Positions 14,454 to 44,766 of a DNA stretch of 64,000 nucleotides are shown piece after piece. Numbering within the stretch: the stretch's first letter is position 1; each line of letters starts with the position of its first letter. A program made the translations under genes and the position numbers. This stretch comes from Rhodosorus marinus CCMP1338 (lineage: Eukaryota; Plantae; Rhodophyta). The notes below the pieces were generated by a model that ran no database searches, was not told the DNA's origin, and worked only from the letters and a program-made list of their open reading frames with translations. Location of the stretch: NCBI GenBank assembly GCA_029953675.1, contig JAMWBK010000004.1, positions 2,480,001 through 2,544,000 on the forward strand. Reading direction: 5' to 3'.

Positions 14454-16104
14454 GTGGTGGAGGTGATGTGCGTGAGTCATTGCGTTTTGTGGAGTGGTTT
14501 GGGTATGGCTCGACTATCGACTTTCTCCTCCTTTGAAAATGCTCCTCGATTTTTTTTCTTGCTTCCGAGCTCTTGCGTGTGTGAGAATTTTTTTTCTTCT
14601 GTATACGATGCTCTTTTGTCCCACTTTGGAATCAGGGTTAGGTTTTCGGGGGGTTTGGTGAAGAACCTCGACTTTCTCAGCGAGTTGGAGCGCTAGGATA
14701 TGCTGACTTTCGTTAGGCTCTCATAGCCATCGCACAGATCGACTGATCTGATCTCTCACGATGCAGGAAACATTTTGCAACTTGCCTAGGCGGTGCTGTG
14801 AACCCTCACGCACATGAAGAAGTGTACGGAAAGCGGATCTACTTTTGGGGAACCGCAGTATACGGTACTGGACTTCTCTCTTCACGAGTTGGCACAAGTA
14901 GCAAGCCGTTCGACGAATCTTGCGGAACGTGCCGACGAGTCGATAGCCGTGCGTTCCCGCCAAGATCTAGCACCCCTGCCAATGACCAGTCGGAGCACTA
15001 GCCCTGTGTTAGTAAACACGCGCGAAGGTCTCCCCCGAGCTCGTACATGTCTTAGTCCCACGCTGACCTGCACCGTCGTCGTTTCGAAACGCCACAATCC
15101 AGCAGGCCTACATGAATCTTGAAGCGGACCGGATGTACCCAACATCTTACAGGCATTCCAAGCCGGTCCCGGACTACCTCCACGCGTACACATACAGAGC
15201 TGTTGTCTACGTACAGAACGGAAGCTGGCCAGACCAATATTGATCCGAAATTCTTGCCTCCGATCAAAAACTGCACTTCGGAGTCACGATCTAATTCCGA
15301 TCACCGAACAAACAACGATTGGCCATACCAATCCCTAAGTCACTAAAACACTAAATAATTGGTCAAAATCAATCCTAACAACACCAAAAATCCCACTAGA
15401 TTTCAGCCATTATAAAATTATTGGATATTACCTCACTATATCAATTCTCTACCCAACTTAATTGGTTAACTGGTTATCAAACTATCCAAAACAGTTTTGT
15501 ACATAAAAAACAAAGGTGGGAATTCCCCCCAAATGTCCAAGGCCAAGACAAAAGGCCAATGTTGCCTTTTGTCCTCCGGGGGTAGGGGTCACGGGCGGAG
15601 AGATTGGGTTTTTAAATACTTTTTAAACTAAGATGAGTTAGTTTTACTACTTTTTAGTTTTTTGTAGAGATATTTTTTAGTTTTCCAAAACGCATGTGTA
15701 TATGCTCTATTTATAGGTTTTTCAGTTATTTTTAAGAGGATTTTCAAGAAATTTGGGGGGGTAAAGGAAACTCATGATGTGAAACTCGGGCTTGAAGAGG
15801 GTGGATTTGGGAGGAGAGTTGGGGTTTTGTACAAGAGGAGATCTTGAAGATAGTTCTTTTTCGGGGGGGAGAGGGGAGTGGGTGTTATATGGGAGGGAGA
15901 TGGGGAGGGTAGAGGAGGCGGTGAGGAAGCTGCGGGAGGGGGTTGGGTAGGAGGGGGAATGGAGGGGAGGGAGGTTAGCTAGGTAAACCGTGGAGGATTT
16001 GTCCGGTTTTTTAATTTGAGATGAGGTGAAAGGTGGGATTTGTGTGGGATTTGGGAGGTCTTTTGGGGTTTGGTGGTCTTCGAATTGGGGTGTGGTATTA
16101 GGGG

Positions 16105-19100
16105 ATGATGGAGCCTATTTCGGGATTTGTGATAACTGTTGGCAGCTCTTACAGCAAGGAGCCCAGGAGAGCTGACATTTCGAGGAGATGTCAGAAGGTG
16201 AAGGTTTGGCAATCGTCTGGAGACAAGAGGACTGACGCTTCTGTGAATGACGATGACTACTGGGCTGATCTGGCCAAGGATATTTATGGTGAGCTGCCTG
16301 AAGACTCGTCCAAGGCCGAGAAGAAGCCCAAGTTCGTCTACCCGGACAATGTCGACCCGAAATCGTTCTTCAACCCCTCCGACGAAATGTCGCAGGCGTT
16401 TGATCAGTGGACGAGTTCCTTGAAGAAGTACGCAGTCAGATATTGCCACAGGGCTTTCTTGGTTGCATTGAATTGTCTCACACTTGTAAATTTTCTCGTT
16501 GCTCAGGGATATGACTAAGCCGGAAGCTGACCTGGAGGCGAGAGATCCAAAGAAGGAAACGGAGTTTTGGCGAAAAAGCGCACAGAACTTGCTTTCAGAT
16601 GACGAACAGGAGGCAGCTGCAGATGAAACTGAGCTATCTTCTTCCGAGAAGATTGACCGTGGAAAGTCGAAGGAGGGGGGAGATACTGTGGCAAGCAGCA
16701 TCGTAAAACGCGAGCAGATGCCTATAGTTCAACAGTCGAAGGAAGGCGCGAGAAACTCTATCTTCAGCTTTTTGAGTAGCGCCGTCCGGAGTGGGTTTGA
16801 TCGGGCTCTCAACACTATTCTTTCTTCCCAGGACAATACCAAAAGAAAGGAGAGAAGGAAGGTAAGCTCCCTTTTGAGGTCAAGCTACTTGTTTATTGTT
16901 GGACAAAAAGACATTGATTTTCTGCATGTCCTTCACCAGTCGCAGGCAGAGGACACGGCAACCACTGAATCCGTCCAGGATGAAGAAGACGAGGACGTGG
17001 AGGAAGAATACGACGAAGATTTCGTTGAATATGAGGAAGAGGACGGAGAGGATGACGGCGAGTATGAATATGATGATGCCGACTATGAGTATGGCGAAGA
17101 GGACAATGAATATGACGAGGACAACGGAATTGTTAACGAGGACGACACAGATTTTGACGATGACTTTGAAGGCGACTATGATGAGGACCTTGAAGAAGAC
17201 GTTGAAGAAGACACCGCAGTTGCTGCCGAGAGAGTAGAGCTAGCAGGAGCTTCCCGAACTGTCTATCCTCCTGCGTCAGAAGCGGACCTCCCAGATGTTT
17301 CCATGTACAACGATTTGGTTGAGGAGATCTACGGGGATCCAAAGGATCAGAAATCAGCAGAGGAGTCTGATGCTCCCAAGTGGGTGTATCCTGATGACGT
17401 TGATCCCAAGCAGTTCTTCAACCAAAGTGACGAGGACAAAACTGCCTGGTACAGCTGGAACGAGTCCTTTACAGGGTGAGATACGAGCTACATTCCTTAC
17501 TAGACGAATAGAATTTTGGAATCTTTGTAGCTAAGAGTGCATTCCCTCGATTCCGCTCCCCCAAATTTTCTACTTGTGCAGAGACGCCGACTCCGGGGTC
17601 CAGGTCCCCGAGTCCAGAGATCCCGCAAAAGAAACGGATTTCTGGCGAGGTGCTGCGACAGAAATAGTGGACGAAGCTAGAAAAGCAGAACCGAGTCCGG
17701 TGTCCAAGGACGTACTAAAGCCTACGGGGTCCTACTCATACCTAGCCGAGGGCAAAGCCTCATTGTATGCTGATGTCACTGACGAACCAGACGAGATCAA
17801 GCCCGCGGACCTAGAAGACATGAATGCTGATGTGGCAAACGACGTCAACGACGTTGCGCGGCTTACGAAAGAGAAGGATGCTGCTCTAGTGGAACAAAGT
17901 GAAAGCCCAAGAGGCGGCGCGGAAGTAAAACCACCAGAAGAGGCTACCGGCTTGGATCTTGATGTCCCTACATTTGACGGTGGTTTTTCTGAACCGGCAG
18001 AAAAACCCAGGGGCGACACGGAAGCGGACCTTTTTCAGACAATTTCCCGGAGGTCAAAGCCGCAGGGGAAATCCGGTCCTGTATTTCAATACCCTGAAGG
18101 AGTAGATCGCAGCACTTTCTTTGATGACAATCCAGAAGAAAAGTCGGCCTGGAGTTCCTGGAATGAGGCCCTGATTCGGTACCATATGAGCTGTCCCTAG
18201 CACCCTTGGTCGGGTAGAGTTAACTCATGTCAAGTCTCCTTCGTCGTCGTTTGTCTCGGATAGGGAAGCTGAGGACTTTTCCGAGGAGGTAGAAATGAGG
18301 GACCCCGGGAAAGAGACAGATTTCTGGCGAGGAGCAGCACGGTCTATCACTGGTACCGAAGCTGGTCAGAAATCGGATCTTGCAGGTGCCACTTCTACGG
18401 GTGAAGCTAGTCAGGGACTGGAGCAAAGAGATCCGGCAAAAGAGACAGATTTTTGGCGCGGAGCTGCGCGAGACCTCATCGGAGGCAACGCAGCAGCAGA
18501 CGCAGGCTCTCAAATCACCTCAGACGTGTCTCAACCCGCTCAGAGTTTCGAGGATACTGAAGAGAAGTCCCCGGAACTTCGAGAAGCTGAAGCCGCTGAC
18601 GAAGATAACTCGGGTCCGAAATGGGTCTACCCGGAAGACGTGGACCCTGATGAATTTTTCATCGAAAGTGCAGAGGACAAGGCTGCATGGGGTTCTTGGA
18701 ACCAAGCGCTCATTAGGTATGTTGCGCGTTGTGTTCGGCTCATGTAGAAGCTCTTCTTGGTTTCTGAAATCTCTTCAATTACCTCCTATCGTTGTGATAG
18801 GGAAGCACAGGAAGCCAGTGGGGAAACCACATACCGAGATCCTGCTAAGGAAACGGACTTTTGGCGTGGAGCAGCCCAGGATATTGCCGAGGAAGTTTCC
18901 AGGGAAGGAGTCCCGGCAGAAGCAAATAGAGAACCGCCCACTGCACCTCTTCCAAATGACCCAACGAAAATCTGGCAGGCAGCAAGAGATGTTGCAGCTA
19001 AAACGCAGGCCTTGCAGTCTGATTTGCAAGATGAGGTCGTAAACTTCAACCCATACGAAGAGTCGGACACTTACAAGGATGCGGCAAAGGAGGTAATCGC

Positions 19101-21426
19101 TGGTTTGCAGCAGCAAGGAAAGGAACCGGCGGAAGATTTAGTGGCAGATTTGCAACAGAGGAAGGTTAGTGATATGCCGGAAAAGAATCTGTGCCCTGAA
19201 CAGCTACCGGAGTCTGATGAACGATTGACTGAATAGGAAGCGTACGATGCGTTGGCGTCGGAAGAAGACGCACTAACGGATGGGAGGGAGGTCTCGATCA
19301 ATGACTGGGACCCTGACAGAGATTGGCGAAGATTCGATGACATTGGAGCAGAACTTGAGCGCCAAAGGGAGGCATTGGAGAACAGATCTCAGTACCTCCA
19401 GGAAAAGGCAGAAGACGAGGCGGACTCTGATCCCCTTGAAACAGCTCCTGAGATGGAGCAGTTACGCTACGTGGACGAGACTGGACGGGTACGAAGTGGT
19501 GCTTACTCTGTTCGAGCCCGAGCGCGGCTACTTTCCGGAGTAGAAAAGATTACTAATCCGGATGAGGTCGTTTGGTGCATTTCAACAGGAACTGACTCCG
19601 GAGGAAGTACAGATGCTGGAAACAGGGGATACAGTATTTGTAGACGAACAAGGACATATTGTTGACAAGGACGGAAACATGATCGATACTACTAACTCGG
19701 ACATGGGCAGCACGGCTGCCCCTGACATGGCACAGCCTACAATAGAAGAGACCACAATAGAGTTTCCAACTCAGCAGTCTCCTATCGATGACGATACTCC
19801 CATCGAGTCAGCCATGAAACCTCCTGTTGTGCTTGGCAGTGCCCCAACCATGGGAAGGAAAAGATTTTCAAGTTCAACATACGGCGGAAGTCGTGGAGGA
19901 ATTGAGCAAGATATAAAAGCACTTGAAGCGCAAGGATTCTCTCTGAGGTAAGTGTGCGATTCTCTGCGAACTTGCGAATTGATGCTCCTTTGCTTTTGAA
20001 CGTACTCACTCGAAAGTCTGGCATCTTCTGCGCAGAGATCCGAAAGCGGACGCTGAGGCTTGGAGAGACGCTGCGAGGGAGGTTGGCTCGGCTGGGACTG
20101 AAACTGACGTAGTGCAGTCGCCAGGGCAGGGGGCTGTGGATGCTGAGGAGACCACTTCAGATACCGCTGAGGAGTCCACTGCAAGTACGGCGGAGAAGAC
20201 CACTGCCAGTGTCGCGAAGGAAACCACCGCAAGTGTTGCTCAGGAGACCACCGCAAGTGTATCTCAGGAAACCACTACAAGCGTCGCTCAGGAAGCCTCC
20301 GCAAGTGCTGCTCAGGAGACCACTGCAAGCGTCGCGCGGGAGACCACTGCAAGCATCGCTCCGGAGACCACCTCAGGAGTCCCTCAGGAATGGAAGCAAA
20401 TTGCGAAGGACCTTGGTACCTCTGCAAGCGACAGGGCTCCGGAGACCACTTCAGGAGTCCCTCAGGAGCGGAAGCAAATTGCAAAGGATCTTGGTACTGC
20501 TGAAACTGAAACTGAGGTATCACAAGCTCAAGAGAAAGCACTCGAGGACGAGGAGACTCCTGCGGGTCTCACTGACCCGTGGAGGGCAGCCGCAAGGGAG
20601 GTTGGCTACATTGTAAATGAAAATGAGCTACCGTCTCCCGAGGAGTCTGTGGAGCCCAATCAGCCTCTGTCAGCGGAGCCGCAGAGCAGTGCCGCAGAGC
20701 AGGCGCAAACCAAATCCCAGGATCCAGTTGATGAAGCAAGCGCTTGGAGCAGCTGGAGTACAGCGCAGAATGCGTGGCAGAGCAACCTTGAGAATCTTGA
20801 GCAGAGAGACCCTGAGAAGGTATCTAGATCGATCCGGACGGACGCCATACTGATTCGATACTGATTCGTGTTTTTGCGGATGTTGAATATTTTCGTTTCA
20901 GGAGGTGGACATGTGGCGCGGTACTGCACAAGAAGTAGCCGGTAGTTCTTCAAGTGAAAAGGGTGGCGACTGGGGGTCTGGATTGGGTGAAGCTCCAACC
21001 GAGCAAGCTTGGAGCAGCTGGAATACCTCGAATCCTCTCGGGGAACCGGAGACGTTTTCATGGTGGAAGAACAGAACCGACGGGGTTCCGCAAGGCCGTC
21101 GGGAAAATCCCTCTGCCTCCGCGGTAGGAAGTGGCGACCAGTTACGATTGAATTACTGCGCCTCCAAGGACTAATTGGCTCATGTTTGTTGCGCCACTTG
21201 TACGCAGGATCCCTCGTTTTGGAGCGGGATGGTGGACAGTGTGACACAACCAAGCCCGCCGCAGCCGAGCCCGCCGCAGCCGGAGGAGCAAAATAGCAGA
21301 GCCCGTGACTTGGGCGATTCGGTCAACATGTGGAAAGATTTTGCGAAGGATGTGAAGGAAGTGAAGCCAGAGGATGACGTCGTATCCCCGGATGGGCAAA
21401 CAGGTACTAATGGGGAGGAGAGATAG
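16105..21426 (+). CDS. Giant (~1,487 aa) acidic, low-complexity, plastid-targeted repeat protein of unknown function; 11 exons
   Basis: Introns placed at GT-AG sites 16428-16506, 16862-16939, 17476-17581, 18179-18263, 18717-18800, 19165-19236, 19489-19588, 19948-20035, 20820-20901 and 21124-21207 leave 4,464 nt, or 1,488 codons including the stop, in one frame. The N-terminus MMEPISGFVITVGSSYSKEPRRADISRRCQKVKV resembles a transit peptide. Repeated motifs are RDPxKETDFWRxxA and PKWVYPxxVDPxxFF..AWxSWN. The last exon boundary is less certain. Confidence 0.8.
20142..20498 (+). repeat. Coding tandem repeat: ten 24-bp units (AxETTASV octapeptide) followed by a 78-bp duplication
   Basis: Translation AEETTSDT AEESTAST AEKTTASV AKETTASV AQETTASV SQETTTSV AQEASASA AQETTASV ARETTASI APETTSGV, then PQEWKQIAKDLGT and a second APETTSGVPQERKQIAKDLGT. 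Confidence 0.92.
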
Positions 21427-21636: not shown

Positions 21637-24600
21637 TCAAGGCGAGAAGAGAGCGGCAATCTCCTTCTCGTAGGCGTTACAAACGACTGGGCGCTTGACC
21701 TTAAGTGTTTGCGTCATCATCTCATTCTCCTGAGTGAATCCTTCAAGGAGTAGCTTCCATTTGGCTACCCTCTCCTCAGGTCTGTATCCTGGCCGCTGCC
21801 GCACACGAACTGAGAGTTCGTCATCATAGTAAGACTTCAGGTCGGGATTCTGCTCCAGTTCTTCCTCGAGCCGTCTCAGCTGCTTCTGCTTTTGCGCCTC
21901 CAACATGTATTGAACCTGCTCCTGCGAACAGAAGATCAAGCGATGTCAGCTTGCGGTATCGTTGGGCTACTTGGGTTGAATTTCAACGTACTTGGTCAAC
22001 CCATCCTTTGCTATTCAGGAACTCTACGGATGGTACGATGAGTGCACCCAGGTGGCGCTCATCCTGGCCAACTAGCATTACTTGATCAATTGCCGGACTT
22101 TCCGTAATCGTTGTTTCGATAATCTCCGGTTCAACATTCTCTCCATTGCTCAGAACAATCACGTCCTTTTGCCGGCCACTGATGACGAGGTCCCCAGTGC
22201 TTGACCACCAACCAAGGTCTCCAGTATCGATATAGCCGTCTATAAAGGATTTCTCGTTCGCTTCCTACATTCGCTTGCAGAACAGGGCTTAAGAATCAGA
22301 GACGAAACCTTCTACCCTTCTTCTCAACCACCGGTGGCAACGTAACATACCTCGTTCTTATAGTAGCCCGCCGTAACTTGAGGCCCGCGTGCCAAAACCA
22401 GTCCCTGTTCCCCCCGCTCCACTTCAACACCGCTTTCGACATCCACCACCTTCACATCGCAGTTCGTAATTGGGAGACCAACTGAGCCTCGGACGTTCTG
22501 CTCAGAACTTCTATTGCAGATTACTGGAGAAGTTTCCGTCATTCCGTAGCCAACGTAAATATCCAGTCCAGCGGCCTCATAAAAGTCTTCAATATGCGAT
22601 GCCAGTGCGCCTCCACCACATATCGACCCCTTATGCCTTCCTCCAAGCCCTTCTCTGATTTTCTTCCATACCTGGAGCGCCGACGAATCCCGACCAACGC
22701 TGATCAGAAGGCAATCACACCAAAACAGAAGCAAACAGTCTGCATCCAGCTTGTTGGGGATACGAGCTTACGAGCACTTGCGCGAGCAGATCCAAAGGCG
22801 TCAACAAGACCATAACAATCAAGCCGAGCACTTTCTTCATTAGAGGCGGAGCCTCCTTCGTCTTTGCGTAGCCCAGTACAATCCGTCGAGCCAGGACACG
22901 CTTTTCTGAGTTTCCCAGGCACGTTGTCTTGGTCAGCGTAAGTCTGATACGAGAAACGGAAAAGGGAAAAGAAGCCTCCCTTCGTCCGGGGAGTACTAGC
23001 ATAGTTCATCAACATGGACGCAACAACTCACTCGAAATCCAGTAAAATAGAAAGAAGATTGCCTTCTTCAACGTGCTTTCTCTCTCCATCTTATTCATTA
23101 TGCCAGTGTAGATGACGTCGAATACTCGCGGAACGCCAACGAGGAACTCAGGCCTGCGGAAAGGTAGTACAAGTGAGTTGTTAGGTACCTCCTCGTCATG
23201 TCGACTAAAAATTAGAACGAAGTTCTGAGCTAACCTGTGCTTTCTTAAATCGTTCCGGAGGTTCTTGGTGTTTGTGAACGCTATTGCCGCCCTACGGGCA
23301 GAAAAAAAGTGCTGCCCAGTGCGCTCAAATATGTGCCAGACTGGTAAAATGCTGAGAAAGGTTTCTCCAGGACGAGGGTCCGCTGCCCCCATGCTCACGT
23401 GCTTAACCTAAATTGAGGGTTACAAACAATCACAATCAGTCCTCATCCCCAAAATCATCTAATGTCTATCCTTCCGCGGATGTGCATCCCTACCTGGTGG
23501 AGAAGATTGTCATGCGTAAGTGGAACCCCCTTCGGGTGGCCTGTAGTGCCGGAAGTATACAACATCGCGGCGAGCCCGCCCCTCTCCGCCTTGATCTCAC
23601 GAGTTTCTGGTTGTGCATTCTCCCTACCCAGCTCAGTTGCTTCTGCAAAGGTATAGCATTTAACGCCACTTTCTAAGGCCTCCTCAGGCAAATCACCCAA
23701 CAAAAGCACAACGAACTTGACCTTTCCCAGCGGCTATCGCACAATAAAACCCATGAAACAGGTCAAGTAAACATCTCTGACAGCGACCATCCAAAACCTC
23801 GCTCGTGCTTCGCTACGCACTGCGATTTTATACTCTCCCTGCCCAGGAGTAACACGACCCACCTACAGCCTGGTGCATTGCGCTTACCAAAATTTTCAGC
23901 ATCTTCCTTAGGACTCTTCGGCTCTCAACCACAAGACCAACGCTCTCACTGTGTTCATAGATGTACTTGAGCTCCTCTACAGGGGCAGTCCCACCTCTCG
24001 CCGCCGATGCGCCTCCGACGAACAGAATTCCAGCATCAGCGACAGTCGCGCGTGCACTCGACTCCGAAAAAATTGAAACCACGTCTCCTGCGACGGGCAA
24101 AACCATCCACAGATCAATGTCCGCATCTCAACTTCGAAGACAATTCTTGACATCTCGATCGAAGAAAACCAGTACATGTCTCACCTTTCTTAACGCCCAA
24201 TTCCTCCATAGCAGCTGCGAACATACAGATCTGCACATAGGCTTCTCTGTGTGTCCAGCGCACGGGATCTCCATGATGTTCGTCAATCATCGATAGTCCA
24301 TCATACTTTGCGTTTCTCTGAAAGTGCTGTGCCACACATTTCCACGAACTGCTCTCCACCGCCATCTCCATCTACTCGACAAAAAAAAATACAAAACGAA
24401 AAAACCAGAAACAAAACCCACAACATCCCTTTTTAAGACCAAAATCTCTATCAAGCAAAAACAAAAACACAACCAATCTCTGAAACAAAACACTCACAAC
24501 ATCCATAACAGGCGACTGCGGATACGTCGAGACCGACACATCCTTCTTCGCAACGCTCTTTCCATCTCCCACGCTCACCGCCACATCCTGAGCTACACTA

Positions 24601-30648: not shown

Positions 30649-31837
30649 CTAATTGAACAACATTCTCGATCGGCCAACTGCAACGAGGGGATTAACAAGC
30701 ACTACTGACAGGAAGTGCGAGACGACGCCCAAGAGAATTGAGACCGGCAACGCGGGTAACGGTTTTCTGCCCCGCAAGGCGATCATCAGAGTGACAATGA
30801 GGCCTATGCGCACACACAGCTTAATATTAGAACATCGCGAGTTTCGATTTGGGTGCGACGAACAACGCTCGGATTATCTGTTGAGAGCCTATCTTACCGG
30901 CAAGAATTGCCGTAAACGAGACAACGACCGGCACTACGCCTGCTATGGAACTGCGTATTACCAGGATGGAGTAGAAGATGAAGTCTCCAAGGCCGAGCTG
31001 AAGGTGTCTCCGCTCCTCAGCCGCCTCTTCCTCCGTTTCTTCGGGGATGATCTCATCAGTACTGGGCTCGGGCTCAATTGCAATGAGACTGGATGCTTCT
31101 GAATCCGATGCGTCTGCTGCGACAGTCCGGGATGACGCAGCTTGGGCTGGGGTGACGGGCTTTGGCGCTCGAGGGGTCTCTCGATAGGGGCTTGTATCGT
31201 ACACGAGAGCGGGAAGTTTCTCTTTCCGAGATTTTGCTATCTCAACGATCTGACGCAGTGGACCAGAAGGGCTTAAAACGGCGTACAAGTCCCATACCAC
31301 AAACGCTATAAGTATAATCCAAATAGTCCATCCAGCAACTCCAGCAATCACGTTGCTAACGATCGCGCTTATGACTATCAAGTATCCCTGGTTTACGAAC
31401 CGAGGCGCATGATAGAACACTGCGACAACCCCGCCGACAGTGAAGTTCCAGAGGACAAAGTGGAAAGTTATTGCGTCCGCGTACATAAGAAATCTGTGGG
31501 TCTGAAACCACAGCAGCAGAGTTCGACCACCCGCCTCTCCGAGAGTCAGTGCGACCGACAGAGCCATCCAATACCTAATCAGATTCGATCGTCCTCGAGC
31601 ATACAGCCGAACCAAACAGTACGTTGATAAAACCGTGAAGAACACGAACGAAGCGATCAGAGCAATTGAAGCCGTCAGATCTGGTGGTCCTTGCTCTAGA
31701 CTTTGGAACGCGGTCCGACCACCCCGCGAATGACTACCAGCCTCCGGTGGGTAAACGCTCCAGTGAAGGTACAAAGCCAGACCCATGCATATCACAACAG
31801 GGTAAATTACTCTTGTCAGTTGCTCAGGTTCAAGCAT
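30649..31837 (-). CDS. PSEN: Presenilin (gamma-secretase catalytic subunit, peptidase A22A)
   Basis: TM6 aspartate in VVWDLYAVLSPSGPLR, TM7 LGLGDFIFYS, and after an intron a C-terminal exon with KPLPALPVSI (PALP). NFTVGGVVAVFY, QGYLIVIS and KLPALVY are also typical. Confidence 0.93.
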
Positions 31838-34334
31838 CGCATGATAAGGTCCATGAACCCGCCTGCACTCCAGGCGACGATTCTCACCAGGAACAGATTA
31901 CAACCCTAGTCCTGCCCCCGGTCTATGATTTTCGCCCTCCACAATTCACTTCCATCCATTGTATCCGTCTACATATGACCTGACTCTTACTTCACACATA
32001 TCAAAATCTCGTACAATCCGCAGAATACCTCGCAGAGCAGTTCCAAAGCTCTCTGCGCAATGCACTTGACCCTTTGGCTATGATTAGACGGTTCTCAGCG
32101 AGCTCCATTGCGGTGTAATCAGACCACTTGATGCTCTTTAGACCTTTCACTCGCACCTGTGCGTTGATAGCATTTCTCCAACAACGTTTTGCAAGGATCG
32201 GCCTTGCATGCGTTCCAATCGCGTTGATGGAGTGTCTCTTTGTTTAGCATTTGCTCGTTTCGTCTGGATGGCCGAATGTCAGGCGGTGGGGTGCGGTCCT
32301 AATCTTTCCAACACTAGATTCGAGAGACTTGGAAGAGGTGTAGAAAACAATCTCTGATCTGGTCGGAGTGTTGTGCAAGTCCCGTGCACTGCTTACAAGG
32401 GTCTCTTCGCGGACGTTTCCTGGGGTTTGTGCTGGAATTTGATTGCTCCTCTTCTACTACCACAATCTGGTTTTGGAGATATTTGCAGTCGTGCTAGCTA
32501 GGGTCCTTGGCATATGACTCAGAAACTTACAGACAGAAAATTATCTTATCCGATAGCCGATTCACCGGCCTCGGGGGCAGACCTGGATCATCGTTGACTT
32601 CCGCGCCGTGCCCCGCAGTTCCCTCGCAGAACAGCCCAGCGATCCGTTCGCTAGTGCGATCCCAATTCGACCACAAGTCAAAACCCTCCAGTGCTGAAAA
32701 ACTTCAAAACTATCAACGTGCAAACGACTATACTCAGATCGATGTACATCCTCTGGAATCCGGAACCGGAACAGGCTTCTTCCACGCCTCTACAGAATAC
32801 AGCCCCGCACTCTCAGCCCCAAAGTCAGAAAAGTCGAGCTATGCAGTGTGCCCGAGCCGGACTCTGGTCGGAAATCACAGATTCCACTATGAAATTTTAC
32901 TGAGCATGATACCTCCCTTACGAATTTTACAAAACGCGATACCTTTTTCAATAAATACATCGAAAATATGAGTAAACATGAATTCACTGTTTTGCTTTAC
33001 CCCCTCAACGATGAAATCATCCGTTTCTGACCCGTGAAGAGGGGATTTAATTTTTTTATTGGGGGGGGGGGATCCACCATAAGAATGCAAGTATTTCTCA
33101 TTAATAAATACAGGTCCATAAAATTTCCGTGCTTATTCCCAGGGGGTAGACAAGTTCCCCTTAACCCCACGAATATTTGAACCGTGTTGTTTTCGAAAAG
33201 AATTCTCATATCACCAATTTATCAATAAAAAAACATATCAGAAATTTCCAACTTGAAAACCCCTTAAAAACAAAACCCTCCGGCGGTCGCCTCCAGTCCT
33301 ACACCCCCCCTTCTTTTTTCCCTAGCTCCTCTCATCCCCCCCCTCCGCTTCAGCAAAAGTCTCATTTTTACCAAAATACGCACTTGGCCACATGTAGCAA
33401 TCGACTAATCGTATCTCCATGCAAGAGCCTCGGAGGGGGGGAAGACAAAATCTGACACGCAATGTGTCCCCACCCATTTTCAGCTTTTTCTGTTAATACT
33501 TAGTGGGCAACACCATTGGCCAAAGAATTGCATGAAAGCGTCATCTGTCGACAACAATCAATATTATATTGACTGATCTTATCATCGTTTATATTAAATA
33601 CCAAAACATATCAATCTTTTATAATGACTGAATTTTGGATGACACTTGAACGTCTGTGTGAAAACCCTGTGCTAACTTCGTGCCGGGAAGGGAAGGGATG
33701 GCAGAGCGACACCACAACCTCTTTTCTAGTTTTCCTCTAAGAAGAACGTCAGGTGTGGTGAAATCTGACTGTTTTCGTATTTTGGGTTTGTTTTTATTAT
33801 TATTGTTAATATTATGTAGGAAACTTAGAGGGAAGGCCTTTTTTGTATTGCGCTTGCTTGTGTGGGTTGTCGGAATTTCCAGAAAGAGACAACGACGTAT
33901 TGTCGATGGGTGGGACCTGGTTTGCATGCTTTTAAGAGGCTTCGCATCGTAGATTATCTCTTAGTTTGTTCCTTTGGCTTTTCTGGTGTTGGGTGGGGTG
34001 AGGCGGGAGGGGGAAGGGGGAGGGGGGTTGCAGAGTAGGATTTTCTGGTGATTTGATTTGGGAACGTTTGTTGTCGTTTGTGGATGTGGGAAGCGGGTGG
34101 AGAGAGGAACTGGGATTTCATGAGGTTCCTCGCTGAGGGACATGTGAGTTCTTTGGGTGATTTCTTTGCTATTTGAGGGGTGTGACTACGTTGGTTTGTT
34201 GAGGGGAGGATTTGAGCTTTTGTACTCACAACCATCCTTTTCTTCGCTTAGTAGTGGGGCTGTGGTCTGTGCTTGTGAGTTTTTTTTGGAGTTTGGGTGT
34301 CGGGCTTCGGACCGACGAGGGAGGTTTAGCAATC

Positions 34335-36649
34335 ATGGCGTCCACCGCTGATATGGAGACAATTAAGCTGAATCACATTCGGCGAAGCCGCGGAAAACGC
34401 ACCGAGAAGATCGTCTTGGAGGAGCGCCTGGGACCTGAAGTAATGAAGCGGTTGGAGGCGATGGCGCATGAATATGTAAGATTTGAGCGAGGACAGTTTG
34501 GATTCTACATTGACCCTGCTAGGTATGCAGTTCGTCAGAGGCAGATCGGCCCCATGGGTCGCGGGCGAAGAAGACAGGTTATTGCCGGTGTGGATAAGGA
34601 CGGAAACGTTATCAAGGCTTGGATTGGAGTTGACAATAGGCTTGAACGTGGTGGCAAAGGAGAGATGATCAACATCCCTATGGATTTCGAGAAAGCCGCC
34701 CTCGGTGGATCTGACTTCGGACCAGGAATGGGTCCTGGGGAAGGAGGTGGAGGCGGTCCTGGTGGTGGTGCTGGTGGAGGGCGAAGGAGGAGGAGAAAGA
34801 AGAAGGGAGGCGTCGCAGATTATAGTTCCGACGAGGAAGGTAGCGAGCTTGACTCAGACGAAGATTCAGACGACTCGTCTGGTGACTCTGATTCGTCGTC
34901 CAGTGGTGACGACGAAAACGGAGTTCCAGATGCCCCAGAAGATGGCCCAGAGGCTGCGGCCGACGGACCTGGTGCTGCGGCAGCCGCTGCTGCCGCTGCT
35001 GCAGATGGCAAGGGCCTGACTGACAAAGAAATACAGGACAGAATTGCTCCGCCTCCACCCAAGCCGGCTGGTGCTCCTGTGAGTGCAAAAGCAAATGAGA
35101 GAATCGGTCGTCAGAAGAAGCAACTGCAGTGGGTCAAGATTCCGAACAACTTGATACCGGGAACCGTGTGGCAGACCAAGGTCGATGACTCTCGGGTTCC
35201 TATTAACATTGAGGAGCTGGATGACCTCTTTGGTGTCGATGCTACACCTAAGTTCGAGTTGAAGAAGGAAGAGATCAAGCCGGAGGTTTTGCCTCACAAG
35301 AGAAAGCACAACATTAATATCTTGCTCGCGAACTTGAGATTGAGTGCGAAAGAAATCCTTGACGTCGTGCGAGTGCCTACTTACATGGATCTAGAGCAGA
35401 GTGCTCTGCAGGCGTTGCTTATTATCTGTCCGTCGCCGGAGGAAGAGGCGCTGTTCAAGGAAAACATGGCGCTCAAGGATCAAGTAGACTCCACCGATCA
35501 GTTTATGTTCGAGCTCATCCAAATGCCAAGTCTTCGTGGAAAGATTCTGTGTGCCTTGGCTGCGAAGAGTTTCAACGAAGAAGCGTTAGAAGTTATTAGG
35601 CAAATGGACACTTATTCGACGATCCCAGATGAGGTATGAACAATCTACCCATTGATATGATTTATATGGGTTACGCTGTCGGGGCGTGACAACTTGCTCA
35701 CGATACTATGTGCAGCTCTTGATCCCCTCCGTTCTCATTCGTTTTTGACAATGCTTCGTGTGCAATAGATTATGAACTCGAACAAGCTTGCAAGAGTTCT
35801 GGAAGTAATTCTCGCACTTGGGAATACTCTCAATTCTGGAACTAACAAAGGAGGTGCTCATGGCTTCAAATTGGAGGCCCTGGCCGCCATTCAGACCGTG
35901 AAGGATTGCAACGGACAGAATCTTCAGGATTTCCTCATAGAATTCTTGGAGAACGAGTACACGGGCCTACTCCCAATCGACGATATGCCAGCACTGCCGC
36001 AGTCCGAGTTCATTTCGCTGGATGGTATTAATGACAATGTTCAACATTTGCTCGAAAGCATAAATTCTGTGAACTCCCAAGTCAAATCTGTCGGTGCGGA
36101 TCCAACGTTGGTAAAGTTCAAGGCGGAGATGGAAACCTTCCTTGTGGACGCCAATAAGGTATGGGCCGTATTTTTAGCTTCAGTGAAGTTTTTTATTTCG
36201 AATTAGCTTTTGCACTAGTGCTAAGCTCTGAATCGTTATGTACCGCTCAGGCAAGAGAGGAGATCGTTTCGCTTAAGGGTTTCATGGAGAAGAAGCTTGA
36301 GGAGTACATGGCGTACATTGGAGAACGAAACAAGAAGTCGCGTAATCGACAAGAAGATACGATCCGATTGATTCGGGAGTTCCTGATAGAACTCAGGGAT
36401 GCGTTAACCAAATTTGAGGAAAAACAAGCCAGGAAGAACAAGGGCAAGGGCACCGACAAGAAGAAGAAGGCTGAGGAACGGAAGAAGAAAAAGGAAGACA
36501 AGGATGGGGTGAAGGAAGCCATGGAGGTGAAGGCCGAGGTGAAAACCGACGAAAAGCCCCAAACTGTTCCACCTCCGCCTCCGGCCCGACCAACGCCCAC
36601 AGATGGAATACCCGTGCCTCCTCCTCCTCCTCCCCCAATGGGATTGTAG
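34335..36649 (+). CDS. Formin (FH2 domain) with atypical N-terminus and C-terminal polyproline
   Basis: Exons 34335-35633, 35769-36158 and 36251-36649. FH2 motifs QLQWVKIP..GTVW, EELDDLF, KRKHNINILL, LARVLEVILALGNTLNSGT.KGGAHGFKLEAL. Confidence 0.9.
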
Positions 36650-38059: not shown

Positions 38060-41000
38060 ATGTCAGGTATCAGAGCCGAGTTTACTGTGAAGTGCAGCAC
38101 CAAATTTGGAGAGAATGTGGGGATAATTGGTTCAGACAGGGCGCTTGGCAGGTGGAAGACGAATGGCGTGGTGAAACTCAATACGAATGAGAGCGCTTAC
38201 CCATCCTGGTCATGCCAAGTCGAGATACAGGGAGAGGGAGAGGTAGAGGTGAGGTCAATCGAGAATTCGAGTCTGCTTGTTTGGTTTGAGGGAATTTCCT
38301 GACTGAGTAGCTGAATTGTCTGGTCTGTTTTCCTGCTTTTTTAGTACAAGTATGTGATCCTCAAGGGTAATAGGATAAAGAAGTGGGAGCTTGAAGGACG
38401 GAAGAACAACCGAACAATCTTGATAGAGAGAACTGAGGCTGGTGGTTCTGTCGTCAGGGACGACGGAGAGTTCAATAAGCTCCCGTCTGACCTAGTACAC
38501 CAACCGGCTGCTGTTTCCGAGGAGAGAACAAATGGAAATGTATCGGTCGGAGATGATCGTCAACAGGTTGCTCGTTTTTCCCCATCTGAAGGCAGCTTCC
38601 TCAGTCATCTTCAGAAGGAGAGTAGTACATCCAGAAGTTGGAGGAAGCGCCTGTCCTACATCAGGGCGCTTCTGAGCGATCCGAACTGTGCCGCTCAAAA
38701 TGCCTTTGACCCGAAATCGCTAAACGATCTGGCCATCGTTGTTGTATACCTCACGTTTGTGAGCAGCGGTGAGCAATCTCTACGTTCCAGAATGATTCTC
38801 CACTCTGCTGAAAGGAATACAACAATCGCTTGCGACGACAATGACGATAACGGTGACGATGACGACTTTGAAATTGCGGGTCGGTCATATATCAGGTCAA
38901 ATTGCATGCGAAGAAGATGGATCCCACTACAGACCGAATCATCACGCGAACGAAGCACGAAAGATCGAAGAGGCGCTTTCTCAAATCTCCAATGACCAAA
39001 ACGCGTATCTCATCCGAAAGATCTATCCGTTGCTCCCGTCGTACCGTAGCGAATTCACGGCTTCAGTCCCGCTGACTAGAATTCGTGATATTGCGCACAG
39101 AAACGACATTCCTCATGAGCTCAAACAGGTAAACAATCAGACCTGACTAAAACGAGAACCCAATAGACAATGAGCCGATGCTAAACGAATGCGGTTCTTC
39201 CTGCTCTTGGGGGAACTAGGAAATCAAACACACGCTTCAGAACAAGCTGCACCGAAGCGCTGGACCGGAAGACTTGGTTACAACAGAGAACCTGTTGAAT
39301 CGAATAACCGCACCCGGAGCCCAGTATTCTGGTGGTAAGTCTGCCAGTAGTCATGACTTTCTACTTGAATTCTCCCGTATGAGCCTGCATACTCGGTCCG
39401 TCTCAAAGCTATGGATGGATGCTGCTCAGCGATCGGTCAGAATGCCATGCAAGATGTTCATGGTCGTGAGCGTGCTCATGAGATTATCTGAGCTCACCCT
39501 GTTCAAATACTTTATTCACAATAGGCTTTGTCAGTGAGTTTCAGATCTTCTATCGAGAACTTCGTGAGTTCTTCAATGCCACGGACCTCGATGAGAACCT
39601 CAAGGAGCTGATGCAAAAGGAAGAACCTAGGAAGTCCTCCTTCGCTGTCCTGAAGGAGTTTCTAGACCTCAAGAGCGCCGGAGTTAAAGCAATTGTCCAG
39701 TTGGAAGCTCTTCTCAATTTGAGACGCGAAATTTCATATGCGATGAACGATTTGGAGCCGGGGGAGGTATTGCAAAGTTGATCCGATTGTTTTTCCTCCG
39801 GCCTTGGCAGGCGCCGGATGGAAGCAAGCACTTATGGCTGGTATTCTTTTTCAATTCAGGTGATGCAACGGGTCCGATTGGTCGATATACAGCTCGAAAA
39901 ATTTTCTTTTGTCCTCCTAGCAGGTATCAACAATACAAATCTGAAGTGGGCTACAACCCTGCACGCTATGAGTCTCGCACTGGAGGGAATTAAACTCTCC
40001 GGGGTTCAATCTGTCGAAGCCGGGTCCATACTCTCTGAGCTTAAACTCGTGTCGGAATCTGATCCGCTTCGGGCTAAGGCATCTGCCGAGAGGTGTGTTC
40101 GCTTCTGCGATGATTTCACAAAGCAGACTGCGGAGCTCTTCGAAGAGTCTGTTAAGGTCGTCGGCGGTGCCTTCAACGTCGAGCAACGAGCCGTGAGCGT
40201 TTTTATCGAAGCGGTACGTGACTGTCTTGACGGTTTGACTCGAAATGCGTTCACGGATTTCATTTCAGTTAGTTTGGTTTTTGCTGATCTTCAAAGTGGT
40301 CCTCACATTTTCCAGGAGGTTCGTTCGACCGTTGTTTTCCAGTTTTCCCGGTTGGCCTCATGGACTATGCGGAACGTAAGGACGCTTCTAGGACAACCTC
40401 CGTGGGACGTACTCTTTCCCGGCACAGCGACCGGCTCCTTGCTTTTCGCACAGAGCATCTCTGAGATTCCAGAACGCGAGCTTCAGCAGCCGCGTGTTGT
40501 CGTATTGGATCGGGCTGAGGGTGATGAAGACATTCCGCAAGCGATTAAGGGTGAGACTTGGAAACGAACGGCCCAAACCAGCATTCAATCACGTCCTTCT
40601 TGAACTTTGACCAAGAATCCCTCTGACTGAAAACCAGGAATCGTTTTGGGACATGAACTTCCTCACTTGTCCCATTTGGGGGTCCGTGCTCGGCAAGCCA
40701 AGGTGGTATTCATCAACTCTGAGGATGCGACTGTTTTTAAGGATTTCAAAAAGGGCTGGGTCTCAAACGCGGAGAACTTGGTTAAACTTGTTGTCAGCCT
40801 CGGCGTGGATTCCCTGAGCATGGAGGATGCTGCTGATACGAGAGCGAAGGAGGACTCTGATACTCGTGATAAAGTTGTAATTGATATACCCGATCCAGTA
40901 GCCAAAAGAGCGCTGGTCGTTGCAACGACGGATGTGAGGATAAGTACGATATACGCATCTTCCCGTCGAATGAGTTTTAAATTATTGTGCGCGACGTTTC

Positions 41001-42236: not shown

Positions 42237-44766
42237 TTACACAATGTACCCTTGATGTACATAGAACAGTAAACACGCAGTTTCCTGCCGGCTTTCGTCT
42301 ATATAAGGACAGTTGGATTGCATGGGTATGAGACTACCGTGACTGTACTCGTACCACAGACCTGTCGATGGTTTTCTACATGGAAGCGACGGAAAGGGCA
42401 GTCTTGGGGTGTGAGTTGAAGAAAAACTAACCGAGCCAATCATCTGTACCATACCTGAGATCAGCCTCATAGTGTCCTTTGGCGTGCACGTCGTTGCGGC
42501 GTACGATACCATGCAGTCTGTATCTTGCGCATACTTTCCTCTCACTTGCACTATTCTTCCTAACGTCCTCACGGTCCTCACGGTCCTCACGGTCGTTCAG
42601 ATATTTACACAAATCAAAAACTCTCTCCGTCAAGTTCCTCTCGGCAACCTCATCGTCATAGATCCTGATACACTCGCCGTCGGCTAAACCTGATCGTAGT
42701 TGACATGTTTTCTCGCTATCTACATCCATCGCAGCATTTCCCTGCGCCTCCTGGATTCGAATGGTTCCAGATTCCTTGACTTCCTCCGCTGAGCCGGTTC
42801 CACTGGTGGTGTCTTCAGAGTCGATCGCCTCTACCGAAAGTGATCCGTCGCCCTCGCCAGATGAGAAGGTGTCTTGTGTTTCATTATCTCCGTCATTGTA
42901 CTTTGGTTCTATAAACAGGTCTGGTCCTAGCGCCTTTGCGGCGTACTCTTCGAGGTTAATATACATTGGAAATGATACTCGATGATTGATGATCGCGGAT
43001 GTCGAATCCTTTTCCACACTTTCGGAGCGTTTGAGATGAATGATGAGCACTTGAGGGAGGACATCTATTGACGACAACAGGTTGCAGCGCTGGCTTGAAC
43101 ACTCCGTGCAGGTTTTCGCCACTGGTTGCGGGGCAAAATATTTTCTCACCGCCTTGACGAGCGAGATCCTCAACTTCTTCGAGTTATCTTCAGGTAGACT
43201 GACGTTCAGATCCTTCAGAACTTGCCGTTGAGACTCTCCGACGTGTTCACACTCCGAGCACTTGTATTCGCGCTTGACCACGCAGGAAAATGACTTCGTA
43301 ACAGCATTCGCTTCTCTCGGCGACATGGTGTTCTTCAAGCTTAATTCGGCAAGTTCATGCTCCATCTGCATCAGTGACAATCTCAAGAACTCGTGTACAT
43401 CTCTACCGGACTCCTTGCCGTGCTCCAACACTAGGCCGAGTTGACCTTCCGGATTCTCCACGCCCGCCCGCGACAAAGGTTCTTCCGCAGTGCTCGCTTT
43501 TGCCTTTGGCGATCGCATCGTATTTCTGAGCATCGAAGCACACAACGTGCCTGAGCGATTTCTTCCCGTGCTCCTGTGTGATCGCCGTAGAAGCGCATAG
43601 AACACGTCCAAGTTCATCAGCGTTTCCAGTATCGTCCTCGTTGGACATTCGTTCCACAAGGTCTCCATCTCGGCTACCATCGACGTGGTAGCATCTTCCT
43701 CGCCACCCGAGGCGACGCCCGTCCCTGTTTCCTCCTTTGCGTTATCGTCAGTCATGTCAACGGTTGCCGCTTTCAATGCTCCCACGACTGATGTACTCTC
43801 TTTCGCGTGGGGTGTCCCGCTCTGCCCACTTGGTCGTGAGTAGAAGTCCTCGTCAGCGACCGTGGGCAGACGCCCGTCATCTCCATCCAGCTCGGCGTTT
43901 CTTTCGCATGTCGCTGGTCCAGTTCCCTCGGCCTCAACTGTCGCCGTGCTTTTGCCTTCCTGTCCATCCACTTGAACGACGATCGCGACCTTATCATCAG
44001 TACTGCAGTTCTGCTTCGGCTTTCGTTCAATTGCTGCTTTTGGAGAACTGGACTCTCCTTGTCTAATGCTTTCGTTTTCGCTATCCAAGTTGACCACTTC
44101 GTCCTCACCATCAGGGACCTTCGAGGCCCGAGCCATCCCACTCGGTGATGTCGACGGCGAGTGCAAGTCCTCTGCACTTGCGAACCTCTGAGAACGCTGA
44201 GGCAGATCTGATCTTCTTTTCTTCATTCTTCTCGACCTCTGGTTGGAAAAGTCTCGATCGACGATCTCCATTTTAGTCCGTCCTCTCAGAGATACGGCGC
44301 CACTGTTTACTCCTTGCTGCCTCTTGTTTCTCTCGGGAGTGGACATTCTGGAAGCGTCATTGTCCCCCTCGAGCTCAAACTTTGACAACAGTTTGGTTTC
44401 CAGCGCACGTCTCATGAGCAGGCTACTCGGCCAGTACTCAAAGTGCGGAGAAAGTGTAAAGTTCGTTCCGTCGGGTAGCCAAACCGACAAGCGCTTGGAT
44501 TTCTCCATTCGCTCCAACGAAATCACCTTTTGCAAATCTCTGATCCTGTAAACGTCGTCTACCTTCTTCGACTTGACCATGAACCAGTTCTTCTCGATCT
44601 TGAACGTGCCCTCATAGCTCGTGACCACCGCTGACCTCGCAGCCAGCGAATGCTCAAGCTTTCCACGGACAATCAGGCCTCCAGGTTGAAAGCCAGATGC
44701 GTCCACATCTTCATCGCTAAGTTCCATAACATCCACTCCATCCTTCCTTCTACCTCGGCTTCTCAT
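42237..44766 (-). CDS. Ubiquitin-specific protease-like (peptidase C19) with divergent catalytic boxes
   Basis: Cys-box-like WNECPTRTILETL; RDVHEFL; Zn knuckles CSECEH and CTECSS; LPQVLIIHLKR; YRLHGIV..GHY. After intron 42454-42376 comes WYEYSHG..ACLLFY. The N-terminal region may be PH-like, as in USP26/29/37 (inference). Confidence 0.8.

Follow-up and report, generated by a model that had tools for sequence, protein, structure and literature searches.

The gene at 16105-21426 on the forward strand of a 64-kb stretch of the red alga Rhodosorus marinus CCMP1338 (hereafter the window, in which all positions are counted) encodes a long and strongly acidic protein of 1,487 amino acids with repeated short motifs anchored by a tryptophan (Trp). 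It belongs to an undescribed family, whose detectable members are all from red algae or glaucophytes. The explanation that we favour, with moderate confidence, is that the protein is a multivalent adaptor or scaffold of the plastid stroma that docks through its Trp helices, the best guess for the partner being the phycobilisome-bearing thylakoid surface. An earlier, sequence-only reading had proposed a Rubisco linker of the pyrenoid, with a plastid scaffold as the fallback.

Eleven exons join to a coding sequence of 4,464 nt, and all ten introns, 72-106 nt in length, begin with GT and end with AG. The translated product is the NCBI hypothetical protein NDN08_002547 of R. marinus (100% identity, 100% length), which together with the joined exons bears out the 11-exon gene of about 1,487 residues in the sequence-only reading. 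The splice model is independently supported because the transcriptome-derived ortholog from Bangiopsis sp. CCMP1999 (P0002) is collinear with the protein across the junctions of introns 1/4, 7, 8, 9 and 10. The gene is real and is the Rhodosorus copy of the family, enlarged through internal duplication.

Aspartate and glutamate constitute 23.6% of the residues and cysteine 0.1%; the isoelectric point (pI) is 4.11, the net charge is about -206 to -208 (-208 at pH 8), and the protein has no hydrophobic segment. The chain had been described as almost entirely low-complexity and acidic. Its acidity stands and its low complexity was overstated, since there are only two true low-complexity tracts: a D/E/Y tract at residues 237-317 and an array of 24-nt units encoding eight residues (ETTASVAQ). 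The remainder is a defined series of conserved short motifs. The D/E/Y tract is not present in the other orthologs read, and Bangiopsis has an unrelated EEQQVVNFDK repeat at that place.

The canonical motif, RDPxKE[TV]D[FM]WRxxA[RK][DE][LIV], is found in seven copies in Rhodosorus, counting here and throughout the matches that score at least 15 bits against a hidden Markov model (HMM) of the motif. About six degenerate Trp helices (DYWADLAKDI, KIWQAARDV, QEWKQIAKDL, DPWRAAAREV, SFWSGMVDSV and NMWKDFAKDV) accompany them. The core W[RK]xxA occurs 10 times, where 5,000 shuffled versions of the protein give an expectation of 0.33 and never more than 3, and W...[AV][RQKT][DESN][LIVM] occurs 11 times with 0.05 expected in the shuffled protein. 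All 13 motif instances listed in the sequence-only reading are present with exact coordinates; the Arg codon of RDPKKETEFW, for example, starts at 16541. A six-frame scan of the whole window locates the motif in this gene only, except for one loose match. The distances between consecutive motifs or Trp helices are 76, 297, 199, 43, 108, 37, 276, 110, 63, 84, 74 and 37 residues.

The five best copies of the motif are 64-80% identical as DNA. Over their 14 core codons, 59% of the third positions differ and 11% of the first and second positions, and the copies are therefore old and each kept by purifying selection, not recent repeats. The motif logo of the family, R-D-P-K-[AK]-E-[TV]-D-[FM]-W-R-[SG]-[AST]-A-[RK]-[ED]-[LIV], applies to Cyanophora and red algae alike. 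In the canonical helix, Phe/Met at -1, Trp at 0, Ala at +3/+4 and Leu/Ile/Val at +7 form one hydrophobic face of small residues, bordered by the conserved residues Arg (-9), Lys (-6), Arg (+1) and Arg/Lys (+5). The Asp-Pro pair ahead of the helix is typical of a helix cap. Such a helix would fit a partner whose shallow hydrophobic pocket has an acidic rim. A motif of 17 residues as sharp and as strongly selected as this almost certainly marks a specific interaction that is yet to be mapped.

The full repeat, which the sequence-only reading missed, is a module in three parts: PKW.YP..VDP..FF, then SAWxxWNxA, then the RDP..W helix. Its consensus is P-K-W-V-Y-P-E-x-V-D-P-x-x-F-F / S-A-W-x-x-W-N-x-A / R-D-P-x-K-E-T-D-F-W-R-G-A-A-x-[DE]-[LIV]. 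In Rhodosorus the module is complete four times and lacks its first part once, and two more canonical motifs are found besides. Introns 1, 3, 4 and 5 (16428-16506, 17476-17581, 18179-18263 and 18717-18800) are located in the same column of the module and in the same phase, following ...SLKK, ...SFTG, ...ALIR and ...ALIR and thus cutting between SWNxALIR and EAxx...RDP. The shared column and phase mean that the module was multiplied as an exon-intron unit. Introns 8, 9 and 10 are found directly before or inside an RDP..W motif.

To find relatives, 14 modules taken from three proteins were combined into an HMM profile, with which 1.84 billion representative proteins were searched exhaustively; 50 proteins were found at E<=0.001. 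Cluster look-ups gave names to red-algal relatives in Bangiopsis sp., Porphyridium purpureum (FVE85_7132), Porphyridium aerugineum, Timspurckia oligopyrenoides, Porphyra umbilicalis, Agarophyton chilense, Gracilariopsis chorda, Cyanidiococcus yangmingshanensis and Cyanidium caldarium. The glaucophyte relative (P0003) has a Cyanophora paradoxa gene ID, whose format agrees with the 2019 assembly (PMC6704402). Every named match is from a rhodophyte or from Cyanophora, and each unnamed match is closest to a red-algal or glaucophyte member. The family is thereby represented in all red-algal classes sampled, including the minimal genomes of the Cyanidiales, and in glaucophytes. No named or recognisable member was found in diatoms, haptophytes, cryptophytes or green lineages, in a library that includes many diatom, haptophyte and cryptophyte transcriptomes. 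A motif-pattern scan of 185,579 species genomes of bacteria and archaea gave 17 pattern matches and no relative. Word-index searches rendered three proteins with the full protein, one with the module profile and three with the central-region profile, the candidate list being saturated by low-complexity words. We know of few plastid proteins that are specific to red algae and glaucophytes.

Twenty-six members (Rhodosorus and 25 orthologs) align from end to end and have about 14 short conserved blocks in a single fixed order. The first part of the order is W..LA+.L, P.W.YPEG, SAW..W, RDPK.E.DFWR.AA, a central two-helix block and WNPDVDW.RFDD; the second part is STYG...LRDPKAD..WR, RDPK.EVDMWRSSAREL, DWGAGL..SAW..W..WW..R.D and a C-terminal W+..A+D. 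The motif RDPK.EVDMWRSSAREL is the most conserved of the whole family and corresponds to canonical motif 7 of Rhodosorus, and module 4 of Rhodosorus is the one that aligns to the single N-terminal module of the shorter orthologs. A usual member has 570-800 residues and three canonical motifs. Rhodosorus (1,487 residues, seven motifs) and Bangiopsis (1,175 residues, four motifs) are expanded, and glaucophyte-type members have expanded independently, to 1,394 residues with eight motifs and 1,248 residues with six. The spacers between motifs vary freely in length and sequence among species, and all members are acidic (pI 4.1-4.7, net charge -29 to -208).

In the Cyanidiococcus-type orthologs P0018, P0008 and P0039, a unit of about 40 residues ending in FEPRDPKKETAFWRGAAQELIG is present in two or three perfect or near-perfect tandem copies, so that recent duplication is changing the number of motifs in pyrenoid-less extremophiles too. 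The 1,248-residue member (P0005) is encoded on a JGI metagenome contig and contains NW and KW dipeptides within long Ser/Thr/Pro tracts. Another protein, P0006 (288 residues, from a JGI contig of 3,065 nt), is 87% identical to residues ~608-890 of the Rhodosorus protein; it is spliced at the intron-5 junction and runs into intron-like sequence where introns 4 and 6 are located. Its source is either an incompletely spliced transcript or a gene prediction for a second strain or species of Rhodosorus.

No characterised protein family was matched in Pfam, PDB or the literature. Pfam searches with the Rhodosorus protein, P0002, P0003 and the 26 aligned members gave only a 20-residue match to DUF1353 and scattered noise in single members. 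The DUF1353 match, in residues 824-843 of the Cyanophora protein P0003 (PPKWVIPEGYEMDGASVP), scores 25.5 bits at a cutoff of 22.5, covers 20 of the 91 positions of the domain and has no counterpart in red algae; it is probably a chance resemblance to the PKW.YPEG sub-motif. PDB chain sequences gave no match to the P. purpureum ortholog P0015 or to the module profile even at E<=1-10. Literature searches by ten accession numbers or locus tags of family members found no paper, and no peptide of the Cyanophora ortholog is listed in the supplementary data of the N-terminome paper on Cyanophora. Trp-rich starch-binding proteins of the ESV1/LESV type were also considered and rejected, as there is no match and as the starch of red algae and glaucophytes is cytosolic.

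AlphaFold2 models were made with family alignments for residues 719-915 (197 residues) and for the C-terminal part of 784 residues, which is collinear with the shorter orthologs. The former has a mean predicted local distance difference test (pLDDT) of 77 and a predicted template modelling score (pTM) of 0.31; the latter has a mean pLDDT of 56 and a pTM of 0.24, with pLDDT <50 in 392 of the 784 residues. The confident stretches are isolated helices that coincide with conserved motifs (pLDDT 80-94). In module 4 the AW..W and RDP..W segments are modelled as separate helices (pLDDT 83-93), and the central block as helices at model residues 91-117 and 121-141 (pLDDT 90-94). One short beta element is predicted, in YVDETGRELTPEEVQMLETGDTVFVDEQGHIVD. 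Foldseek found no match for the 197-residue model in PDB, which carries little weight for a model without a tertiary fold. As predicted by these models, the protein is an intrinsically disordered chain that carries pre-formed or inducible helices.

In nearly every complete member, the leader is uncharged to basic and has a Phe among its first four to nine residues, as judged by eye from the N-terminal sequences. Examples are MAAFVG in Cyanophora and MPTLLFAL, MFLPLFVP, MKLLFVRP and MALLFLPT in other members; in Rhodosorus (MMEPISGFV) the Phe is at position 8. An import signal to the stroma that depends on Phe has been documented for cyanelles and inferred for red algae (PMC2222254). A stromal location is, if indirectly, well supported by these leaders. 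Close to its C-terminus the Cyanophora protein P0003 has a hydrophobic helix (LGAIITGAVALVGTVLAAL, residues 1371-1389, mean hydropathy 2.27 over 19 residues), and the glaucophyte-type P0005 has one as well (VLIGVSVFCSLIIIMLAVAV); both suggest a tail anchor. No such helix is present in Rhodosorus or Bangiopsis, and none was seen in the other red-algal sequences read.

The combination of a fixed motif order, strong selection on the helices, free spacers and no fold is what makes us regard the family as multivalent adaptors that act through short linear motifs. From these observations we infer where the protein acts, how it docks and on what, as follows. The nuclear-encoded protein would be imported into the stroma and there form a long, strongly acidic and mostly unfolded chain displaying short amphipathic helices anchored by Trp. 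Each helix would be a weak docking site, and several on one chain would give a multivalent adaptor or scaffold whose partner or partners are conserved between red algae and glaucophytes. The ancestral form may have been attached to a membrane through the tail anchor that glaucophytes appear to retain and that would tether their chain there, whereas the red-algal copies would have lost it. The Rhodosorus copy has grown from the usual 650-700 residues with three canonical motifs to 1,487 residues and seven motifs, by tandem duplication of the exon-intron module and by insertion of low-complexity spacers. Of the sequence-only reading, the plastid-targeted, largely disordered and multivalent protein with Trp helices is thus supported by the Phe-type leader of the family, the models and the motif counts, and a plastid scaffold is still viable.

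Red algae and glaucophytes are the eukaryotes that bear phycobilisomes, and their thylakoids are unstacked. The distribution of the family coincides with these organisms, and for that reason a role at the thylakoid is favoured; the phyletic pattern is a weak pointer to the surface of thylakoids with phycobilisomes, in preference to Rubisco. Within the adaptor explanation we suggest, tentatively, a role at the stromal face of these thylakoids in assembly, organisation or turnover, and not that of a fixed structural subunit. That the family is limited to eukaryotes with phycobilisomes and seems to be membrane-anchored in glaucophytes is in itself a positive lead.

Several points weigh against this explanation. 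Both the localisation and the partner are reached by inference, and the phyletic pattern, which points only weakly to phycobilisomes, is what the link to them is drawn from. The same pattern would fit primary plastids with unstacked thylakoids, or a failure of gene transfer to secondary hosts. Divergent relatives in green lineages or cyanobacteria could lie below the sensitivity of the HMM. PDB includes structures of the P. purpureum phycobilisome and megacomplex, and neither the P. purpureum ortholog nor the module profile matches a PDB chain; the ortholog is therefore not a resolved stoichiometric subunit of the phycobilisome, and no chain of a solved red-algal photosystem structure corresponds to it either. 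Phycobiliproteins and this protein are both acidic, though the motif itself carries conserved Arg and Lys.

PEX5 offers an analogy for how such an adaptor might operate. The N-terminal half of PEX5 is also a disordered chain in which several Trp-anchored helices serve as low-affinity, multivalent docking sites. PEX5 differs in that it belongs to another compartment, has another motif and no sequence relationship to the family, and has a folded cargo-binding domain that is not found here. CP12, a small disordered regulator of the plastid with an AWD.VEEL helix, is likewise a disordered stromal protein with a conserved Trp helix that docks on an enzyme, and it is also present in cyanobacteria and green plants. 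A relationship to CP12 was rejected because there is no match to the Pfam CP12 family at E<=1 and because Leu is at +7 and not +6; the Rhodosorus protein also has no Cys pairs and is 20 times larger. By analogy, the Rhodosorus protein would work like a scaffold of the EPYC1, PYCO1 or PEX5 type while belonging to none of them.

The PEX5 analogy also invites a different explanation, in which the family takes part in plastid biogenesis or in the import of proteins at the envelope, forming a membrane-associated acidic docking platform specific to the ancestral red/glaucophyte translocon. The WxxxF/Y helices of PEX5 on PEX14 and the acidic domain of Toc159 are analogues. The tail anchor of the glaucophyte members, the multiple Trp-anchored amphipathic helices on a disordered acidic chain and the retention of the family even in the highly reduced genomes of the Cyanidiales would agree with such a platform. 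We nevertheless consider it unlikely, because the red-algal members have no membrane anchor and no similarity to any Tic or Toc family was found in Pfam. Import in red algae and glaucophytes does differ from green import, yet secondary red plastids keep the Phe-dependent import step (PMC2222254) and no member of the family was detected there.

If the headline of the sequence-only reading were right, the Trp-[RK]-x-x-A helices would be stickers on form ID Rubisco, separated by acidic spacers, and the protein would condense or anchor the pyrenoid matrix of Rhodosorus. We find this reading unsupported and regard it as improbable, as distribution, charge, the strict motif and spacing are all against it. 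There are real likenesses to known linkers. Similar to EPYC1 and other Chlamydomonas proteins with Rubisco-binding motifs, the protein appears to be plastid-targeted and largely disordered with a sticker-and-spacer layout, and it has several short helices in which Trp is followed by Arg or Lys and by a small or aliphatic residue at +4. Similar to PYCO1, the linker of red-type Rubisco in diatoms with KWSPRGGS stickers, it is a repeat protein of a form ID plastid with Trp-containing stickers. The anchor and the many motifs of the glaucophyte copies recall the Rubisco-binding membrane proteins of Chlamydomonas, and Rhodosorus has the highest canonical-motif count among the red algae sampled. Rhodosorus has a pyrenoid, no linker is known from rhodophytes, and their pyrenoid components are essentially unknown according to a review of April 2026 (PMC13655443).

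The distribution of the family does not track pyrenoid-bearing species. There are 3-4 canonical motifs in Cyanidium, Cyanidiococcus, Gracilariopsis and Agarophyton, which have no pyrenoids, and equally many in Porphyridium, Timspurckia and Porphyra, which have them. Equally repeat-rich orthologs in pyrenoid-less red algae had been named in the sequence-only reading as evidence against a linker, and this is nearly what is found. The Gracilariales are not known to have pyrenoids. Cyanidiophytes have been described as being without them too (PMC10154280). Secondary red lineages keep form ID Rubisco and pyrenoids, and the family is undetected in them. Furthermore, Cyanophora differs from red algae in its type of Rubisco and hardly at all in the motif: its Rubisco is the green/cyanobacterial-type form IB and that of red algae is form ID. 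The small subunit, to which EPYC1 and the main PYCO1 sticker bind, is very different between the two forms. Known linkers are restricted to lineages, EPYC1 to close relatives of Chlamydomonas and PYCO1 to Phaeodactylum, outside which it has no homologs (PMC10288592); the family is deeply conserved and older than the split between red algae and glaucophytes.

Charge, motif and spacing also differ. PYCO1 is prion-like with a pI of 10.03 and is positively charged like EPYC1 (PMC10288592), in contrast to the acidic pI throughout the family (4.1 in Rhodosorus). There is no homology to EPYC1, and the residue before Trp is Phe or Met here and Asp or Asn in the green motif. The strict motif [DN]W[RK]xx[LIVA] has no match in Rhodosorus and 10 orthologs, although the relaxed W[RK]xx[LIVA] has 10 matches in Rhodosorus, and the KWSP(RGGS) sticker of the PYCO1 type has none. 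The FLIPPer criteria define a linker candidate as a largely disordered protein with repeating structured elements at a regular spacing of 20-120 residues. Disorder (pTM 0.24-0.31, half of the modelled C-terminal part at pLDDT <50) and repeated structured elements, canonical and degenerate, are both present in Rhodosorus, whereas the spacing is irregular and without period (37-297 residues, with three gaps >120) and neither a positive charge nor a high pI is found. Considering its distribution and charge, the protein should not be placed on candidate lists for pyrenoid engineering without a binding test.

A broader version, which is speculative and to which we assign a similarly low probability, is that the family organises, by stickers and spacers, a stromal condensate or membrane-tethered layer that is older than the split between the red and glaucophyte lineages. 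The docking site of the Trp-Arg helix would then be a conserved photosynthetic complex. In Rhodosorus and Cyanophora, the expansion to 7-8 or more stickers would increase the valency, whether for a pyrenoid-like role or for organising the antenna. Should Rubisco be the partner after all, for example through a conserved surface of RbcL, this would be the first linker in rhodophytes and glaucophytes, the first acidic linker and the first linker family across phyla.

Extreme acidity throughout the family, the prediction of disorder for more than half of the modelled C-terminal part (784 residues) and the free variation of spacers between species could also be explained by a polyanionic buffer or entropic spacer of the stroma. 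Such a protein would bind cations or keep unstacked thylakoids apart, with the Trp helices mediating only self-association or weak adsorption to membranes. This is hardly probable considering that the motifs are strongly selected, fixed in order and near-identical from glaucophytes to red algae, as is typical of specific docking sites, and that conserved Arg and Lys inside the motifs point to a defined acidic or pi-cation contact. Least probable is a cytosolic or secreted protein whose N-terminus is not a transit peptide: the targeting call was made by eye only, but almost all complete orthologs share a leader that is uncharged, hydroxylated and basic and has a Phe near its start, which matches the documented signal, and Rhodosorus has no hydrophobic core resembling a signal peptide.

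The features of the gene and the genes further along the window are listed in Table 1. The 70-nt duplication downstream of the tandem array has left a younger copy, VPQERKQIAKDLG, in which the anchoring Trp has become Arg (TGG to CGG), a natural case of sticker decay.

Table 1. Coordinates of the exons, of the conserved and lineage-specific features of the gene, and of other genes in the window
Feature	Position	Strand	Remark
Exons 1-6	16105-16427, 16507-16861, 16940-17475, 17582-18178, 18264-18716, 18801-19164	+	
Exons 7-11	19237-19488, 19589-19947, 20036-20819, 20902-21123, 21208-21426	+	
Transit-peptide-like N-terminus MMEPISGFVITVGSSYSKEPRR..., Phe at position 8	16105-16206	+	N-proximal Phe kept across family
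First degenerate Trp helix DDDYWADLAKDIYG	16249-16290	+	matches mature N-terminal W..(L/M)A+.L of orthologs; alignment consensus WxxxARxLG
Module 1: PKFVYPDNVDPKSFF, AFDQWTSSL, intron 1, motif 1 RDPKKETEFWRKSAQNLL (16541-16594)	16327-16594	+	28.1 bits
Acidic D/E/Y low-complexity tract, residues 237-317 (81 residues)	16970-17212	+	
Module 2: PKWVYPDDVDPKQFF, TAWYSWNESF, intron 3, motif 2 RDPAKETDFWRGAATEIV (17616-17669)	17375-17669	+	33.0 bits
Module 3: PVFQYPEGVDRSTFF, SAWSSWNEAL, intron 4, motif 3 RDPGKETDFWRGAARSIT (18298-18351)	18078-18351	+	33.2 bits
Canonical motif 4 RDPAKETDFWRGAARDLI, solitary, 43 residues past motif 3	18427-18480	+	36.6 bits
Module 4: PKWVYPEDVDPDEFF, AAWGSWNQAL, intron 5, motif 5 RDPAKETDFWRGAAQDIA (18835-18888)	18616-18888	+	33.9 bits
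Central conserved two-helix block DPTKIWQAARDVAAKTQALQSDLQDEVVNFNPYEESDTYKDAAKEVIAGL	18958-19107	+	consensus W..AR.VTGEM..LQ..LR.EL..YNP.E..D.YRDIARELVGP
NDWDPDRDWRRFDD block, then long charged helix	19300-19380	+	consensus GSGWNPDVDW.RFDD
LRYVDETGRELTPEEVQMLETGDTVFVDEQGHIVD block across intron 7; sole segment with predicted short beta strands	19462-19666	+	model residues ~251-290
RKRFSSSTYGGSRGGIEQDIKALEAQGFSL, intron 8, canonical motif 6 RDPKADAEAWRDAAREVG	19856-20087	+	22.2 bits
Tandem array, ~9 copies of 24 nt (8 residues, ETTASVAQ-like); lineage-specific spacer	20163-20378	+	
70-nt duplication, 89% identical: VPQEWKQIAKDLG and decayed copy VPQERKQIAKDLG	20379-20495 (within 20358-20505)	+	
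Degenerate Trp helix LTDPWRAAAREVG	20568-20606	+	8.0 bits
SAWSSWSTAQNAWQSNLENLEQ, RDPEK, intron 9, EVDMWRGTAQEVA (canonical motif 7)	20739-20940	+	32.1 bits
GDWGSGL...AWSSWN...SWWKNRTD block	20965-21081	+	consensus SDWGAGL..SERSAW..W....WW..R.D
Two C-terminal degenerate Trp helices: ADPSFWSGMVDSV (across intron 10) and DSVNMWKDFAKDVK	21121-21357	+	
Trp-motif peptide RDPAKETDFWRGAARDL			
Presenilin	30827-31837	-	
Formin FH2 protein	34212-35639	+	
Alpha-glucan water dikinase fragment	39818-40603	+	
Ubiquitin C-terminal hydrolase	42427-44766	-	
NAD-dependent epimerase/dehydratase	58916-59635	-	
Protein kinase	62424-63440	-	

Directly upstream of the start codon, 15780-16100 is rich in purines and particularly in G (runs of GGGAGG and GGAGGG, GC skew +0.17), and is possibly part of the promoter or the 5' untranslated region. 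On the reverse strand at ~21637-22734 there is a gene for an AMP-binding enzyme similar to acyl-CoA synthetases (PF00501, E=1e-22). The open reading frame of its last exon ends ~210 nt from the stop codon of the gene studied here, and the two genes are therefore arranged tail to tail. The genes from presenilin to protein kinase in Table 1 (30827-63440) are ordinary nuclear genes. An open reading frame at 49025-50086 on the forward strand has a domain with the suggestive name 'Rubisco LSMT substrate-binding' (PF09273, E=5.6e-6); the domain family is broad, and the frame, which probably encodes a SET-domain protein-lysine methyltransferase, is unlinked to the present finding.

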